Shown here: positions 3,548 to 28,663 of the stretch, piece after piece
Numbering within the stretch: the first letter of the stretch is position 1
How the letters are laid out: the number at the start of each line of letters is the position of its first letter
Assembly (NCBI GenBank): GCA_964057225.1
Contig: OZ059897.1
Location: 11,780,001 to 11,844,000, forward strand
Length of the DNA: 64,000 nucleotides
Reading direction: 5' to 3'
DNA from: Auanema rhodensis
Lineage: Eukaryota; Animalia; Nematoda
Made by a program: the position numbers and the translations under genes
Notes under the pieces: generated by a model
What the model was told of the DNA's origin: nothing
Seen by the model: only the letters and a program-made list of their open reading frames with translations
Databases searched by the model: none

Positions 3548-6500
3548 TTAAGATTCAAGCAAAACACAAACTTCTAACAAACATCCAATTGACCAAGCTT
3601 GTGTAGGACAACTATCATGACATTCTTCTCCATCTTTTTGAGTTAGTTCAGGAATGGAAGACCATGGTGAATTCTATATATACATCATTAAGTTATTGAA
3701 CTATTGAATTAATAAATATACCTGGATATGACGGTAATAAGCTCCTAATTTCTTTTGAACTTCAGAGCGTGCTTCATTTAGATATTCTCCTCCCAGCATT
3801 TTTCCTACTGTCAATCTTGCACGCAAATACATTGCTGCTACCCAAACCCATTCCTTTAAATCAAACAATAAGTAATAACAACATGTAAATAATAAAATTA
3901 CAGGTCCTTGATGATAATTCCATCCTTTAGCCGTTTGTTTGTTGGTACTATCATCGGAATTATGATAGAAGCCATTGTACTCCCAGTCACTAAATATGTT
4001 GTCAGTTATATAGAAAAAAACAATAAAATACCTAGGATCCAATGTTTTGAAACCTATTGGGCCTGACAAGTGTTTTCTTGCAGTGTTCAGAGCTTTCCAA
4101 GCCAAATGTAAATCAAGAATTGAGGGACACTACAGTGGTAAAATTTTAGACTAAATTTTAACTCATGGCACTTACAACAGCAATAGCGATAGGGAAGTTA
4201 CATCTTAATTGAAAGTCTGCATATCTAGCAGCAGATCCAAATGTATCTTTAATTATTTCCTTTTTATTGCATAATTCATCAGAGCAATCTTCTGATACAT
4301 AAAATTTGGAAGCAAAGTTTTGCTGAATACGCAACAGCCAATCATTCCAAGACCAATTATCATTTTCTATATTAATGTAATATACTAAATGATAAGACGG
4401 ATATCTTACGGTAAACAACTCCTTTGTACTCAATAAGGTTTTTCTCTGACCATGTTTTCAATTTTTCTAAGACAGCAGCAGCTAAACCTTGAATTTCAAC
4501 AGCAGCTCCATCACGAGGTGTTGCTGGTAGTCCCTTATTACCGGCCTCAAAAAGAATAATATGCTTTCTTTTCATATAATAATATACTTTAGCACTGCTT
4601 CCCATTTTGTCCATCCATGTTCCGCAATTTAGCCGATTTCCTCCATGTATAAAACCGGTATTTTTATCTACCCACACATTAATATTGAATCCTTGAAGTC
4701 ATATACAAACATGATAATTCCATAAAACTTTAACTACCTTCATCTTGCATTTGTTCATCAATAGAATGTCCTGCATTTCTCTCACGGTAACTTATGCCCG
4801 AAAAGTGGCGTTGAAGAGCTTCATACATAGTATTGATTAGAGGTTCTTCCTAAATAGAAGTTTTTTTTTTCCAATTACTATAAAGTCTTTACTTTGCTTT
4901 CTTTACCAAACTGTGTATCATCATGTGGATAAATTCTTAAAACAGTATCTTGAAGAATGGAAAGACCGTTCGGAACTATATCAATATATTTTGTAATAGA
5001 ATAGAGCCAGAACCATACAGCATCTCTACAGTTGTAACGGGAGCCTAGAATTTTTTTGTTCAAGTTACAAGGTATTTTAAAACCTTTTCCTTCTGCAAGA
5101 AGATTAGGGATTAATCCATGTCTTAAACATCCAGCGAAAGATAAAATAATTTTTCTAAAAAATGGATAAAAGCTGAGTTTTTATTATTTAAGAAATACCG
5201 TGCATCATCATAGCGTCCTGTACTTAATAAACAACCTGGAAGGGCAATAAAAGTATCTCTACCCCAATTTCGCCATATTCCTGCAGCAAAATGAGGAAGA
5301 CCAGCAGCTAATGAAGAAGCATTATCACCAAATTTAGATGGCAATGGTGCTAAGGTAGCATCTTTCACATAACCAATAAAGGAAACTGAGCTCAGCATGA
5401 GCATTTTGATCAAAGTCGAATTTGGGCTAAATATATACTTTTGTTGACGAGTAGAAGAATATATCGAACCAATTGAGTTTCTGGAGAAGTACGGTACGGA
5501 CAATATTATATACATGTGTAAGAAGACTTTCGAAGTAACTTGGTCGTAGGTAATACGGTATTACTTGAAGGGGTTTGAATATATTTTCCAATAAACAAGC
5601 AATCTGAAACAAAAAACACACCTATTTTTACTAATAAATTAACTACTTCTGGCAATCCCTCATATTTGTTTAGTCGATTAACGATGAAATCAGCGAGCCA
5701 GAGCCCTTCTCTTAAATTAGAACACAATGGATGACCCAAATCATTATTTTCTCTAATTTTTTTGAAAACTGTCACAATTCCTGTAAAAATATGTTATACG
5801 AGCATTTTCTATGAGATTTGCCTTGCAATCCTCCGAAAACAAATTTTCCAAAGTTGGGTACGTCATATGATTCAATTCCAATGTTAACTCGATCTTCTTC
5901 AGAACAGCAAAAAAGAATGCGGTTGAAATTTAATAAACTTGTTCTCTCCAAAGAATTTTTAAACTCTGAATTAGCAATATTATAATAATAAAAGATTGTT
6001 ACAACTATATACCGCTATCTACAGATCCTTGCAAAACATTTCGAATTTCCTTAATAGCAGAAAGTTGATTATCATCAAGACGAATCCTAGAGAATTGAAA
6101 TTAAATAATCTCCATGAAATTTATTTCTACTTTAATCCAACTACAGATCCACTTGGGAAGTTGACAAGTTCTAGATAATTACCGTGCTGACGAACCATAC
6201 AAGCTTGATCAATTGAAATATGTTCTCGGATTTCAGTCTGATAATCAGATAAGCCAACAATATATTCATCCGAGCCTTTAAAACTTTAAATAAAACATAT
6301 TATAAGTAATTGCTGAACCATTTGAAGATTTTGACTTATTTTCCATCACCTTCATTTCGAACAAAATTTCTTCCAAAACTCCTAAATTTTGTTGTGAGAT
6401 TTAAAAACTGATATTCTCCTACCACCAATCGGAATATGCTTTAAATGAACATCATTTTTAAAAGCATGTTTATCGAATAGTGTATGGCTTATAACAATAA

Positions 6501-23860: not shown

Positions 23861-26768
23861 ATGGGTCGTACCTGCCCACATTGTGGATGTTCCGAAATAG
23901 ATGAAGATGCAGCTAGAGGTTTTTTATAAGTAGATATCTAGATTGCTTTATGGTAAATTTTTGAGGTGATGCTACATGTACAGGATGTGGTACAGTTCTG
24001 GAAGAATCTATTGTTGTTTCTGAAAACCAATTCCAAGAAAGGGCAGGTGGAAGTGGTCACACACTTGTCGGTAATAAGTTGAAACTTATAACTCAATAAA
24101 AAAAGACAATGTGAAGGTCAATTTGTATCTATGGATAGAGGTTCATCACATACACTACAAGGTGTTCCGGGGCTTAGTTCTCAGGAATCAAGAGAAGTAA
24201 CATTTCAAAAAGGCAGGAGATTAATTGAGGAGGTAGGTATCCTTGTCATTTAAGTTTTTAAAAATTAACTTAGATAGCAAGTCAATTGCGTATTAATCAG
24301 CATTGCATAGAAACTGCTTACAATTTTTTCAAAATGTGTGTTAGTAGGGGGCTTACAAGAGGGCGAATCAGGTATCTTCAATATTATAACTCTTAGCAAC
24401 AATGCTTTAAGGTCACATGTTGTAGCATCGTGTATGTATATGACATGCCGGTTAGAAAATACTTCACATCTCCTCTTAGATTTCAGCGATGTTACACAGG
24501 TGAGTTATTCTAAACTATGGCTATTTTTTATTTGTTTTACTTTGCAGGTTAATGTTTTTGATCTCGGTAGAACGCTTTCCTTCCTTAGTAGATCTCTTCG
24601 CATTAATTTGCCAACAACCGATCCTTGTTTATATATCATGCGCTTTGCTTGTATGTTAGAATTTGGAGATAAACAGAAAGAGGTATATAATTTTAAAGTT
24701 TTTTTTTATTGTATATGTGTTAGGTTGTGAACCTTGCTACACGTCTAGTTCAAAGAATGAAACGAGATTGGATGTCTACTGGTCGTAGACCGACAGGACT
24801 ATGTGGTGCTGCTTTACTGATTGCTGCTCGGTACAATATTTACTAACACATATATATATATATATTTGTTTTTCTTATTTCAGGGCTTTCAATTTTAATA
24901 GATCTATTCCTGATGTTGTTCGCATTGTTCATATTAGTGAATCTGTTGTTAGAAAACGTTTAGAAGAATTTAGCCAAACTCCCTCAGGTGCACTCACTAT
25001 TGATGAATTTACTACAGTTGACTTGGTAGTTGATTCTGCTTATTCGTAATATAATAATTTTAATTAAGGAGCATGATGAAGATCCTCCGGCCTATCGCGA
25101 TGCGAAAAAGAAAGCCCGCGAGCAACAATTAAAAAATGAAGCTCTACTTGCTGAAAGGGTCGAGAAAGATGTATATACTTCAAATTTGCATTTTTTGTAA
25201 TGTTGTGTTTTTCAGTTACAACCCGTAGAGGAAGAAATCGAAAAAGCTTTAGAAAAGAAACGTAGAGAAAAGTTTAAACATACTCCTTATGCAAAACTTG
25301 TTGCTGGTGGGCTTGGTTTGTTTGAAAATGTTTTTTTTTTGTAAATTTAAATTTGAATTTATAGACGATCCGGATGTTGGTAAAGCAGAAGAACGACTAG
25401 TTAGAAATGATATAATCGATTCTGTATTTGAAGCTGCTGACCAAATAACACCTATCAGGTTTGTGCATATTTTACGTTTCATTGTAGTTAGTTTGAATCA
25501 TTATAGTACGGTTTCTGAATATGCTCAATATCGTCCTACATTAGAATCATTGGGTATCAATTCAACATATCCTGATATAAAATGCAGAACTGAACCAAGT
25601 AGATGTGATATTCCAGAAGGAGAATTAGATCTTGATGGTATAATTATTTTCTTATATCATGTGTGAGAATATGCTTTCAAGATATTGATGACGATGAAAT
25701 AGATACTTATATTCTGAGTTCTGCCGAAGCTTCACTCAAAGAAAAATTTTGGATGAAATGTAATGGTGAGCATTTGAAAGAAATGGAAAGAAGGTAACGC
25801 TAGCTATAAAATTGCGTATTATCATCTTTCCTTAAGAAAGCGGGAACGAGAAGAGCAAGAAGGCAAGGATAAAGAGGGTGGAACGAAAAAACGGCGTCGA
25901 ACCGCTGCTGTTCGAAATCCTGGATTTTATACTCCTGCGAATACAGCAGTAGAAGCAATGGAAAAAATTATTCATGTAAATATTTCTAATTTTTTCAAAA
26001 TTACGTTTTTTTTTAGGAGAAAAAGTTGTCTAACAAAGTAAATTATGATATATTAAAAGAAATTGAGCATACTCCTTTGCCGGGAACAAGTCTTTGTGTT
26101 AAACCAGAGGTAATTCCTTTTTATATTAAAATATGTTTTGATGTATATGTTTCCTTATGTTTCTACTTGCCTGTGGTCAGCTAGAAAATTCTTTATATTA
26201 AAAACTATTGCACGATAAGAGTTATGATTTAAATTGTTTTATTTAGATAACAACTCCTACTCGACCAGCACAGAACAAAAATCCTAATGAGGTAAGAATT
26301 GTATTCAACTCTAATCAAATTATTTATTTTTAAATTTAGGATAATGAAAATATTTCTAAAATGGCAATACAAGGATCTTCGGTTTGTTGCTATAAACTTT
26401 CTCTTAAATTTTTTATTTCCAGAAAGATGCAAAAGATTTGACAAAACGAGAGAAAGAAATACGTAGGAAAAATTGTCAAAGTTCTTCCTTTGGTACCTTA
26501 GACATGGATAAAATTCTTAAAGTGGAGCCGCCTATTGTTCGTTTTTCTACATTGTTTCATCGACTATTAATATTTTTTTAGGAATCAGACACGGGTACTG
26601 AAAGTGAAGATAAGAAGCCTGTCCCCTCACTGACATCTAGGTAAGTGTTCCTTATATATGCGTTTAACGTAGAAATATAATAGGAGTCGATTTGGAAGAT
26701 CTCGGCGACTGGTAAAACCGTCCCCCAATCTTTGTAGAACTCAGTCCGACAAACAAGGACAAGGATAA
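23861..26768 (+). CDS. brf-1: TFIIIB 90 kDa subunit BRF1
   Basis: [34 protein letters not shown], cyclin folds ([28 protein letters not shown]), [25 protein letters not shown]; 20 exons. Confidence 0.97.
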
Positions 26769-26994
26769 TTAAAACTCAAGTATTCCGGAGACCTTAGTCA
26801 TTATGAAGAAGGAAGAATGATACACGAGTATAAGTACAACAATTTTATAATAACAGATAAAGATAATTTATAAAAAAAATCTTGGATATTTTAAAAATAT
26901 CTAATTAGTACTACAGAAATTTAAACACTTCTGGCACTAGTAATCTAAGAAATCTTTATAAACTTAACAATAAACAATATTGGCTATATAACTT

Positions 26995-28268
26995 CTACAT
27001 GTATTTATTTGCTAAGGCGAGAACTTTCGAAAATTGTACATTACTGCGCTTGTCCATAAGCTTCAAGGGAATTGGAGCAGTAATACGATTGCCCAAAGGA
27101 TTTCCTTAAAATTGGTAAATCTTGCTATTTTAACACCATTTTCATACCTTCTTCATCCAATAGAACTATATTATTAGAATCTGTTACTGGTACACCATGC
27201 TTTCTATAGTGAACGTGAGTATTAGCACCTACAACAAATGCTTTACGCATTTCTCCCCTGATTGCAACAAGAATCTAAAACAATGAATAATCTAAAATAG
27301 TTTGTCAAAAAAATCAACCTTATCTCCCAATGTAGCATGAGGTAGATGTCTTGAACGCATACCTTGTTTATACACATGAATACAATAAGCCAGTTTACCT
27401 GAAGAATAAATATTTTTGAACAAATTTGATTTCAAAACCTGAAGCATTTGCTTCTTTCCCCATTGCCGAATTATCTACAACCATGCATCTTGTTCTTCGG
27501 TGGATTCCCATTGATGGGGCTCTAGTCCGATGTTTAGATAATTCGTACCTTAATTAATGACGATAAACAAATTGAAAAAATTTAATATAATATCTATTTA
27601 TTACAAAATCTAGGAGAACAATTATACATAAAAAGCCCCATTCCAAGCTTTAGACTTTTTAACTTTCGCTGGCGCATTAACCATTTCATAAGGACAATGT
27701 CTACAACCATTCCCACAACATTTCCCTTTATGAAGATGATGAGAAATTGTAAAAACTGAATATTTAGTTTTGGGGTCGATATAAGTAAGTTTCCGTTCTT
27801 CAACGGCCTGCAGATGTTTCATATAAATATCACGTTCTTCACTGGTTAGTTGATTATAATCATCCCAGCACGCAGTTGACTTATTAATTGAATCCTCAAA
27901 CAACACATAATTCGCTATCTTTTCTCCATTTTTATGTTCCACTAGTGCATAAGGCTTCTTCCCAGACCCTTTCGGAGTATAATAAATAGGTAATTTCTCT
28001 TTAAATCGATCTAGTTGAGATTCTGCTGGAGCAGCAACAGCATTTTCACTAAGAGTTGAAACTTTGGTGCAATAGGTGGCAACCCTCCTGAAAACACCAT
28101 TCTCACAAGAAAGAGAAATGGCGCAATATGAAAAAAAGGAATAATCACTCACTCTGGTTGAGGATACCATCTTCCTGAAGCGTAACATTTGCTGATTTTC
28201 TCCAAACCATTTGAAACTTTTAACACATTTGGTGAAAGCGAACTTTTAGCCCAAGATAAAATATTCAT
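26995..28268 (-). CDS. mrpl-14: Mitochondrial ribosomal protein L14 (exon 1 at 28268-28153 spliced to the distal acceptor at 27549)
   Basis: MGIHRRTRCMVVDNSAMG...CIHVYK...LGDKILVAIRGEMRKAFVVG...DSNNIVLLDEEGNPLGNRITAPIP; phase-2 junction GA|G keeps frame. Confidence 0.93.
27622..28268 (-). CDS. C1orf53/DUF5522-like small zinc-binding protein (same exon 1 spliced to the proximal acceptor at 28088)
   Basis: HLQAVEERKLTYIDPKTKYSVFTISHHLHKGKCCGNGCRHCPY motif; in frame with exon 1; own stop (27622) and AATAAA (27602-27597). Confidence 0.85.
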
Positions 28269-28663
28269 ACTTCTGAAACAATATTTTATTAATTTCAATT
28301 AAATATTATGATAGTTTACTAAGTATAAGTATTTAGAATTGAGATTTCGGGGGAAAATGCTGAATACGCTAATAAGACGCAAATTCGGTGCAATGGAAAT
28401 AGCTGCTTAAATGTGGCATTTGTGTCAGCAATTATATTTTCTAAAAAATAGTGTTGAATTTTATCATAAGTATATGTATGGTTTTGAAGGCGAAAATGTG
28501 TTCGATGTTTTTTGTTTTTATTTTAATTAGAAAATGCTGACAGTTTTTTCTGAATGTCACGCACTAATGTTTTGAAAATGTATTGTTAACGATGAACAAT
28601 CTTTCTTTGACTTACGAACCGTTTTGTTTATTATTATTAACGTAACTTACAGGTGATTTAGCT

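Follow-up and report, generated by a model that had tools for sequence, protein, structure and literature searches.

In the nematode Auanema rhodensis, one leader-encoding first exon very probably serves two proteins. The locus lies on the minus strand of a 64,000-nucleotide (nt) stretch of contig OZ059897.1 (GenBank assembly GCA_964057225.1, positions 11,780,001 to 11,844,000; hereafter the window, with positions counted from its first base). There, a single splice donor at the end of exon 1 is joined in RNA contigs to either of two acceptors, the near one giving a 193-amino-acid (aa) protein of the DUF5522/C1orf53-like family and the far one the 180-aa mitochondrial ribosomal protein uL14m. 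The two products are, as judged from their sequences, unrelated: they fall into different Pfam families and align with each other solely across the shared leader. The locus is the ortholog of Caenorhabditis elegans mrpl-14 (F45E12.5). It does not represent a new kind of discovery; the mechanism is of a known kind, and the gene structure is already present in the C. elegans reference annotation.

Structure and transcription of the locus

An earlier note, drawn up from the letters of the window, had placed the DUF5522 exon on the same strand inside the first intron of the uL14m gene. Its coordinates, phase, donor, both acceptors, and both reading frames all hold against sequence and translations, and the nesting itself is borne out by RNA junctions, by shared N termini in other nematodes, and by the C. 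elegans annotation. The coding part of exon 1 consists of 38 codons plus GA, starting from the ATG at 28268 and ending in phase 2 at the donor GA/GTGAGT; its 3′ end encodes the conserved motif ASGRWYPQP. In frame with exon 1, the proximal exon continues as E-RVATYC and runs via CCGNGCRHCPY to a terminal FYV, and an AATAAA follows 19 nt past its stop, where the note had reckoned with about 20 nt. The distal exon, also in frame, reads E-YELSKHRTRAPSMGIHRR, and exon 1 together with four further exons yields the 180-aa uL14m. An internal Met in uL14m exon 2 (ATG 27511-27509) is aligned with the start of bacterial L14. Upstream of exon 1 stands a TTTCAG acceptor (cag 28275-28273), a probable trans-splice site, from which the exon begins at 28272 with a 4-nt 5′ untranslated region (UTR).

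The RNA data were Logan assembled contigs of runs X1, X2, and X3 rather than reads, and depths taken from them are rough. These three RNA-labelled runs contain 73% of the words sampled from the 64-kb stretch; a fourth run, which contains 97% and is colinear with the stretch, is probably DNA and may be the source of the assembly. Both junctions that the note had predicted are present in the RNA contigs. The joint from 28153 to 27548, which skips 604 nt with GT..AG ends, occurs in X1, X2, and X3 at depths of 45, 216, and 306, and the joint from 28153 to 28087 occurs in X1 only, at a depth of 19. The remaining uL14m introns are all removed with GT..AG ends. A single first-exon donor is thus found joined to either of two exon sets, as in processing of the unc-60 type. 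The uL14m body has depths of 33, 103, and 114 in the three RNA runs and the DUF5522 exon has depths of 19, 26, and 35; by contig depth, the distal (uL14m) form is roughly 2 to 4 times deeper than the DUF5522 form. In X1 the depth of exon 1 alone (73.8) is close to that of the distal joint (45.4) plus that of the proximal contig (19.1), which indicates that exon 1 serves both forms and that little uL14m mRNA lacks it. No contig covers intron 1A, as reckoned from the contig depth table, and a DUF5522 contig (27519-28087) stays colinear across the AATAAA and takes in 30 nt of the uL14m exon, so that some RNAs are proximally spliced yet extend beyond the poly(A) signal.

We propose that the locus yields one primary transcript whose single first coding exon carries one 5′ splice site. 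When this donor is joined to the near acceptor at 28088, the message encodes the DUF5522 protein with its own stop and would then end at the AATAAA; when it is held until the far acceptor at 27549 has been made, the DUF5522 exon is skipped and uL14m produced. The first splice would decide, as in C. elegans unc-60, since after proximal joining the distal acceptor would have no donor left.

The two proteins

The proximal exon matches Pfam DUF5522 (PF17653) over profile positions 1-48 of 48 (E value, 5.2e-22; 78.1 bits against a cut-off of 25). Eight residues, Y, C, C, G, C, R, H, and C (a Tyr and the CCGxGCRHC motif), are invariant in 26 members of the family. The protein is 73% identical to that of another Auanema (P0001) and 56% identical to the C. 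elegans NP_495528 isoform. A structure model of the C. elegans ortholog is confident over the C-terminal 100 residues (core pLDDT, 75-95) and has a fold like that of human C1orf53 (Q5VUE5), the sole match in a fold search of AFDB Swiss-Prot (E value, 1.2e-4; probability, 1.00; TM-scores, 0.30/0.40); disorder in the N-terminal halves keeps the TM-scores low. The best matches of the model in a PDB fold search were to a trypanosome mitoribosomal protein and were not significant (E values, 0.25-0.41; probability, ∼0.12; TM-scores, 0.14-0.21), and PDB sequence and profile searches with DUF5522 returned nothing. One might guess from its cysteines that the protein holds a metal or iron-sulfur site. 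In the colinear and probably genomic run X5 (depth, 4.7), which bears the code of a different organism, one base is missing from a run of five T/A at 27751, within the DUF5522 coding exon; the likeliest cause is a homopolymer error at low depth and not a true frameshift. The same run differs from the window by an A>T change at 27308, in a uL14m intron.

The spliced 180-aa uL14m is 83% identical to C. elegans uL14m (P0097) over 155 aa, and its residues 52-180 are 97% identical to the protein of Auanema sp. JU1783 (P0056). A full-length L14 domain is recognized through these close orthologs: P0097 matches Ribosomal_L14 (PF00238) over residues 53-178 (E value, 8.9e-16), and P0056 carries PF00238. 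The closest named proteins are nematode uL14m/39S L14, and an N-terminal extension precedes the L14 core; on its sequence, the distal product is the mitochondrial rather than the cytosolic or bacterial type of L14.

Comparison with JU1783 gives a nonsynonymous divergence (pN) of 0.15 and a synonymous divergence (pS) of 0.77 for the DUF5522 exon (pN/pS, ∼0.2), and a pN of 0.02 for uL14m exon 2; synonymous sites between the two genomes are saturated (pS, 0.77-0.79). Low pN against saturated synonymous sites indicates that both exons are under purifying selection.

Conservation across nematodes

Protein searches used orthologs as queries in place of the spliced window proteins. With the DUF5522 part, they returned orthologs throughout Chromadorea whose leaders end in ASGRW[WY]PQP, and with the uL14m part, nematode uL14m proteins of 170-180 aa that have the same leaders. 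DUF5522 and uL14m proteins of the same species have identical N termini in C. elegans (P0097/P0110; 37 residues), C. brenneri (P0055/P0009), C. briggsae (P0096/P0106), and Parascaris (P0113/P0031), and the N terminus is also shared across the related filariae Wuchereria (P0073) and Loa (P0037). The note had suggested looking for the arrangement among mrpl-14 isoforms of other nematodes, and C. elegans indeed annotates both forms. The same two-way use of a first exon in many nematodes puts the pattern in the window far beyond chance.

At the loci of C. elegans, Auanema, Gnathostoma, and Cylicocyclus, the DUF5522 exon is nested in intron 1, and the distance from its stop to the distal acceptor is ∼115 nt in C. 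elegans, ∼70 nt in Auanema, and >1 kb in Gnathostoma and Cylicocyclus. Bursaphelenchus xylophilus (L003:3082-3452) has kept the leader exon and uL14m, and its 372-nt intron 1 holds a decayed DUF5522 relic, in which a TTTTCAG acceptor and ∼60 codons resembling the N-terminal half of the family are accompanied by two in-frame stops and the CCGxGCRHC motif is gone; this species seems to have lost the DUF5522 isoform at this locus. The uL14m of Trichuris trichiura lacks the motif, and no DUF5522 sequence was found within 10 kb of it. The shared-exon arrangement may date to the chromadorean ancestor.

Fifteen nematode uL14m proteins agree without exception at six residues where exon 1 ends (G, R, W, P, Q, and P) and at six where exon 2 begins (E, S, H, R, R, and P). 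Only 4 of the 15, confined to part of Rhabditina, have the internal Met seen in the window, and the other 11 have P, T, F, Y, or Q at that position. Without a Met there, uL14m of most nematodes needs the start codon of exon 1, which excludes an ordinary operon as the general design.

The shared leader and mitochondrial targeting

The exon 1 leader of the window is Ser-rich and has charges of +5/−1, and exon 1 peptides of 16 nematodes have 26-40 aa with 2-5 basic residues, 0-1 acidic residues, and many Ser, Thr, and Leu. Such a composition is that of matrix presequences. Exon 1 is thus predicted to encode a mitochondrial presequence with which both products would be imported. As uL14m has to reach the matrix, the leader would most simply be its presequence, lent to DUF5522. 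A table in PMC10253548 gives the prediction “Mitochondrion” for a Heterodera ortholog. Human C1orf53 was considered as a proven mitochondrial protein and set aside, as the text of the MitoCoP paper lists an antibody to it and gives no result.

The invariant GRW[WY]PQP at the end of exon 1 may contain a cleavage site or mark where both mature proteins begin. The invariant Arg of GRW[WY]PQP sits like the Arg in known cleavage motifs of the mitochondrial processing peptidase (MPP); a Lys or Arg placed likewise, three residues before the Ala of ASGRW, is present in 12 of 17 species. The exon 1 motif runs on, invariant, into uL14m exon 2, and in the DUF5522 isoform a variable linker comes next. This continuity on one side and variable linker on the other suggest that uL14m is likely the original owner of the leader exon and DUF5522 a captured guest. 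A more specific proposal, which we regard as rather improbable, is that ASGRW[WY]PQP survives as a common mature N terminus or self-contained processing site and that DUF5522/C1orf53, with its four invariant Cys and its His, is a matrix factor tied to uL14m and the large mitoribosomal subunit; if true, such a functional tie would account for the retention of the nesting throughout chromadorean nematodes.

Copepod uL14m proteins (P0281, P0289, P0306, and P0136) have a conserved N-terminal extension of their own before the L14 core (W-R..., then WPNYK..[LY][TV]H[RH][RK]H). The resemblance of the copepod WPNYK..LTHRKH to the nematode WPQPEYELSKHR was considered as a trace of an ancestral leader and rejected, as a hidden Markov model built on the nematode stretch (22 residues) gave the copepod sequences no higher scores than their shuffles.

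Alternative explanations

One case that the note had named as overturning its reading is an ordinary operon. In such an operon, DUF5522 would be the upstream gene, polyadenylated near 27585, and uL14m would be trans-spliced to spliced leader 2 (SL2) at 27548 and translated from its internal Met as a 129-aa protein, the cis junction being a minor by-product. The layout does look intercistronic (the acceptor follows 73 nt after the stop, and the AATAAA precedes the acceptor by 47 nt), the internal Met is aligned with the bacterial L14 start, and automatic annotations of Auanema, C. remanei, and C. nigoni give the 129-aa protein. However, the junction of exon 1 to 27548 is present in three of three runs at depths that are not below those of the uL14m body, the 13 codons before the internal Met are conserved with six residues invariant, 11 of 15 nematodes have no Met there, and the RefSeq uL14m isoform of C. 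elegans starts in exon 1. The combination expected of a downstream operon gene, a conserved start codon of its own and spliced-leader trans-splicing, was not found for uL14m, and an operon of this kind is extremely unlikely. It is also very unlikely, if marginally less so, that the DUF5522 isoform amounts to noise in splicing or to a passenger in decay and yields no functional protein in this species. The proximal joint occurs in a single run of the three, the DUF5522 exon has the lower depth of the two, and the B. xylophilus relic shows that the exon can decay; against this stand an intact open reading frame with a full DUF5522 match that includes the invariant CCGxGCRHC, the excess of synonymous over nonsynonymous divergence from JU1783, and coverage of the exon at a depth of 19-35 in all three RNA runs.

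A hybrid of the two modes has somewhat more to recommend it, although we still consider it unlikely: alternative splicing would be the main route, and proximally spliced RNAs would be cut, the orphan distal acceptor being trans-spliced to give some leaderless uL14 from the internal Met. Trans-splicing in nematodes usually acts on acceptors that have no donor upstream, contig 27519-28087 crosses the unspliced distal acceptor while intron 1A is uncovered, and the internal Met is limited to part of Rhabditina. Yet no spliced-leader loose end is present at 27548 in the contigs, the contig depths leave little room for a pool of uL14m without exon 1, and leaderless uL14m may fail to be imported. Several observations also weigh against alternative splicing of a shared targeting exon as we describe it. 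No poly(A) tail or 3′ end of the DUF5522 form is present in the RNA contigs, one of which crosses the distal acceptor, and no spliced leader is present on exon 1 or at 27548, although contigs would probably miss one. The junctions come from contigs and not reads, and the proximal joint is found in one run of three, though all three cover the DUF5522 exon. That exon 1 directs proteins to mitochondria is a prediction from composition, and the direction of capture is deduced from internal evidence, with Trichuris and a tardigrade lacking the motif.

Choice of acceptor

The earlier proposal that a weak distal AAG sets the ratio of the products found no support: the distal form dominates, the last uL14m intron also ends in AAG, and the distal site of C. 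elegans is CAG. The AATAAA that follows the DUF5522 stop in the window is GATAAA in JU1783.

Intron 1A has an identity of 0.67 with that of JU1783, and the other introns have identities of 0.36-0.53. A 36-nt block on the minus strand (28123-28088), which forms the 3′ half of intron 1A and reads CGCCATTTCTC...TGAGAATGG.G.TTTCAG, is ∼85% identical between the two species. Its reading frame differs between the window and JU1783, and stops occur at this place in C. elegans; what is conserved is therefore the nucleotide sequence. On this comparison of two species, the 3′ half of intron 1A is a better candidate for a splice-choice element than the distal AAG. A coding role of intron 1A in a retained-intron isoform was considered, as in both the window and JU1783 the intron stays open in the frame of the DUF5522 exon, and was rejected because the frames of the block differ and C. 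elegans has stops.

Annotation of the locus

In the C. elegans reference, both mrpl-14 products start at the same base (4001 of locus L001), and the DUF5522 product ends at 4747 and uL14m at 5336. RefSeq gives them as the 197-aa NP_495528 (DUF5522) and the 179-aa NP_495527 (uL14m), annotated as mrpl-14 isoforms a and b, and a 2007 paper lists NP_495527 as F45E12.5b (PMC1950093). The name “Protein MRPL-14 b” has been copied to Aphelenchus. Full-text literature searches found no paper that mentions DUF5522 and none on mrpl-14 isoforms or on a mitochondrial role of C1orf53.

Names and models of the two products are frequently confused. The DUF5522 isoform goes by “60S ribosomal protein L23” or by “Mitochondrial Ribosomal Protein, Large” in C. 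elegans and by “uL14” in Parascaris. Fused DUF5522-L14 models exist for Dictyocaulus (P0006), Panagrolaimus (P0040), Aphelenchoides (P0074), Acrobeloides (P0116), and a filarial-like sequence (P0117), and an Atlas cluster of 50 nematode members carries both domains. In the annotation of JU1783 (L002:2346-3518), DUF5522 (P0001) begins at an out-of-frame ATG in exon 1 and is read through intron 1A, and uL14m (P0056) begins at the internal Met, as it does in the other automatic annotations with a 129-aa protein.

Locus features and neighbouring genes

Table 1. Features of the A. rhodensis mrpl-14 locus, in window positions
Feature	Positions	Strand	Details
Shared exon 1	28153..28272	minus	Coding 28268-28153, 116 nt; RNA contigs start at 28272/28274 and end at 28153
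Intron 1A	28088..28152	minus	65 nt, ends in TTTTCAG; spliced out for the DUF5522 isoform (joint 28086 to 28152 in X1)
DUF5522/C1orf53-like coding exon	27622..28087	minus	466 nt, 154 codons plus stop TAA (27624-27622)
DUF5522 3′ UTR/spacer	27549..27621	minus	73 nt; AATAAA at 27602-27597; distal acceptor TTAATTAAG ends at 27549
uL14m exon 2	27439..27548	minus	Opens with conserved YELSKHRTRAP; joint of exon 1 to 27548 in X1-X3
uL14m exon 3	27319..27398	minus	RNA contig joints 27396 to 27437 and 27274 to 27319; translation
uL14m exon 4	27148..27274	minus	RNA contig joints; translation
uL14m exon 5	26995..27104	minus	Stop TAG (26997-26995); acceptor TTTTAAG; joint 27103 to 27147

The locus (Table 1) is flanked by two genes on the plus strand. 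The divergent neighbour begins at 28651 and bears a canonical SL1 (GGTTTAATTACCCAAGTTTG, as a loose end) on contigs of >10 kb; ∼380 nt separate it from exon 1, and the two may share a two-way promoter region. The convergent gene (26600-26939) has a 43-nt intron (joint 26637 to 26681) and is probably a BRF1 homolog; C. elegans and JU1783 both have BRF1 as their convergent gene downstream. A contig of X3 spans the 3′ ends of the convergent gene and uL14m, so their transcripts overlap or abut at ∼26920-26940.

Significance and comparison with known systems

The literature found holds no description of the nematode mrpl-14 arrangement, in which two unrelated proteins stand behind one leader, and which is an animal counterpart of grass sdh2/rps14. 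It provides a lead for the uncharacterised human C1orf53 family, in the form of a predicted mitochondrial location and possible co-regulation with a mitoribosomal protein, and accounts for the recurrent annotation errors (fused models, 129-aa truncations, and misnamed DUF5522 isoforms). With its 65-nt first intron containing a conserved block and its 73-nt spacer, the compact locus is also a handy model of the choice between near and far acceptors by a nematode donor.

C. elegans mrpl-14 resembles the window in its shared first exon (37 residues identical between its two products), its phase-2 donor after CCA GA, its nested DUF5522 exon, and the short gap from stop to acceptor (∼115 versus 73 nt). 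It differs in having CAG at both acceptors and an intron 1A of ∼150 nt, whereas the window has a distal AAG and an intron 1A of 65 nt.

Nematode SL2 operons likewise place two same-strand coding units under one promoter, with a short spacer and a poly(A) signal before the acceptor, but the downstream unit of the window is cis-spliced to exon 1 and, in most species, needs its start codon. In C. elegans unc-60, a shared first exon has a single donor and stands ahead of two exon sets, a proximal one that has a 3′ end of its own and a distal one, and the transcript is committed by its first splice; only ∼90 nt separate the proximal poly(A) site from the distal acceptor, and the same logic has been proposed for cha-1/unc-17 (PMC3875643). 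The exon shared by UNC-60A and UNC-60B supplies the start codon only and the products are paralogs, and that of cha-1/unc-17 is non-coding, whereas the window exon encodes a 38-residue leader for two unrelated proteins. For ASD-2 and SUP-12, which regulate unc-60, no counterparts are known at the window locus. The pair lev-10/eat-18 was considered as a further precedent for a shared first exon and set aside, as the paper shows the first exon of eat-18 within intron 1 of lev-10.

The grass precedent cited in the note is confirmed by PMC1543663 (citing Kubo et al. 1999 and Figueroa et al. 1999), which describes two unrelated mitochondrial proteins, Sdh2 and Rps14, sharing one targeting exon by alternative splicing. 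As in the window, where targeting by the shared exon is predicted, one product is mitoribosomal and the second gene lies inside an intron of its host. In grasses, however, the ribosomal gene is the guest and was recently transferred from the mitochondrial genome, whereas the window belongs to an animal lineage, and in it the ribosomal gene is likely the host and an old nuclear gene is the guest.

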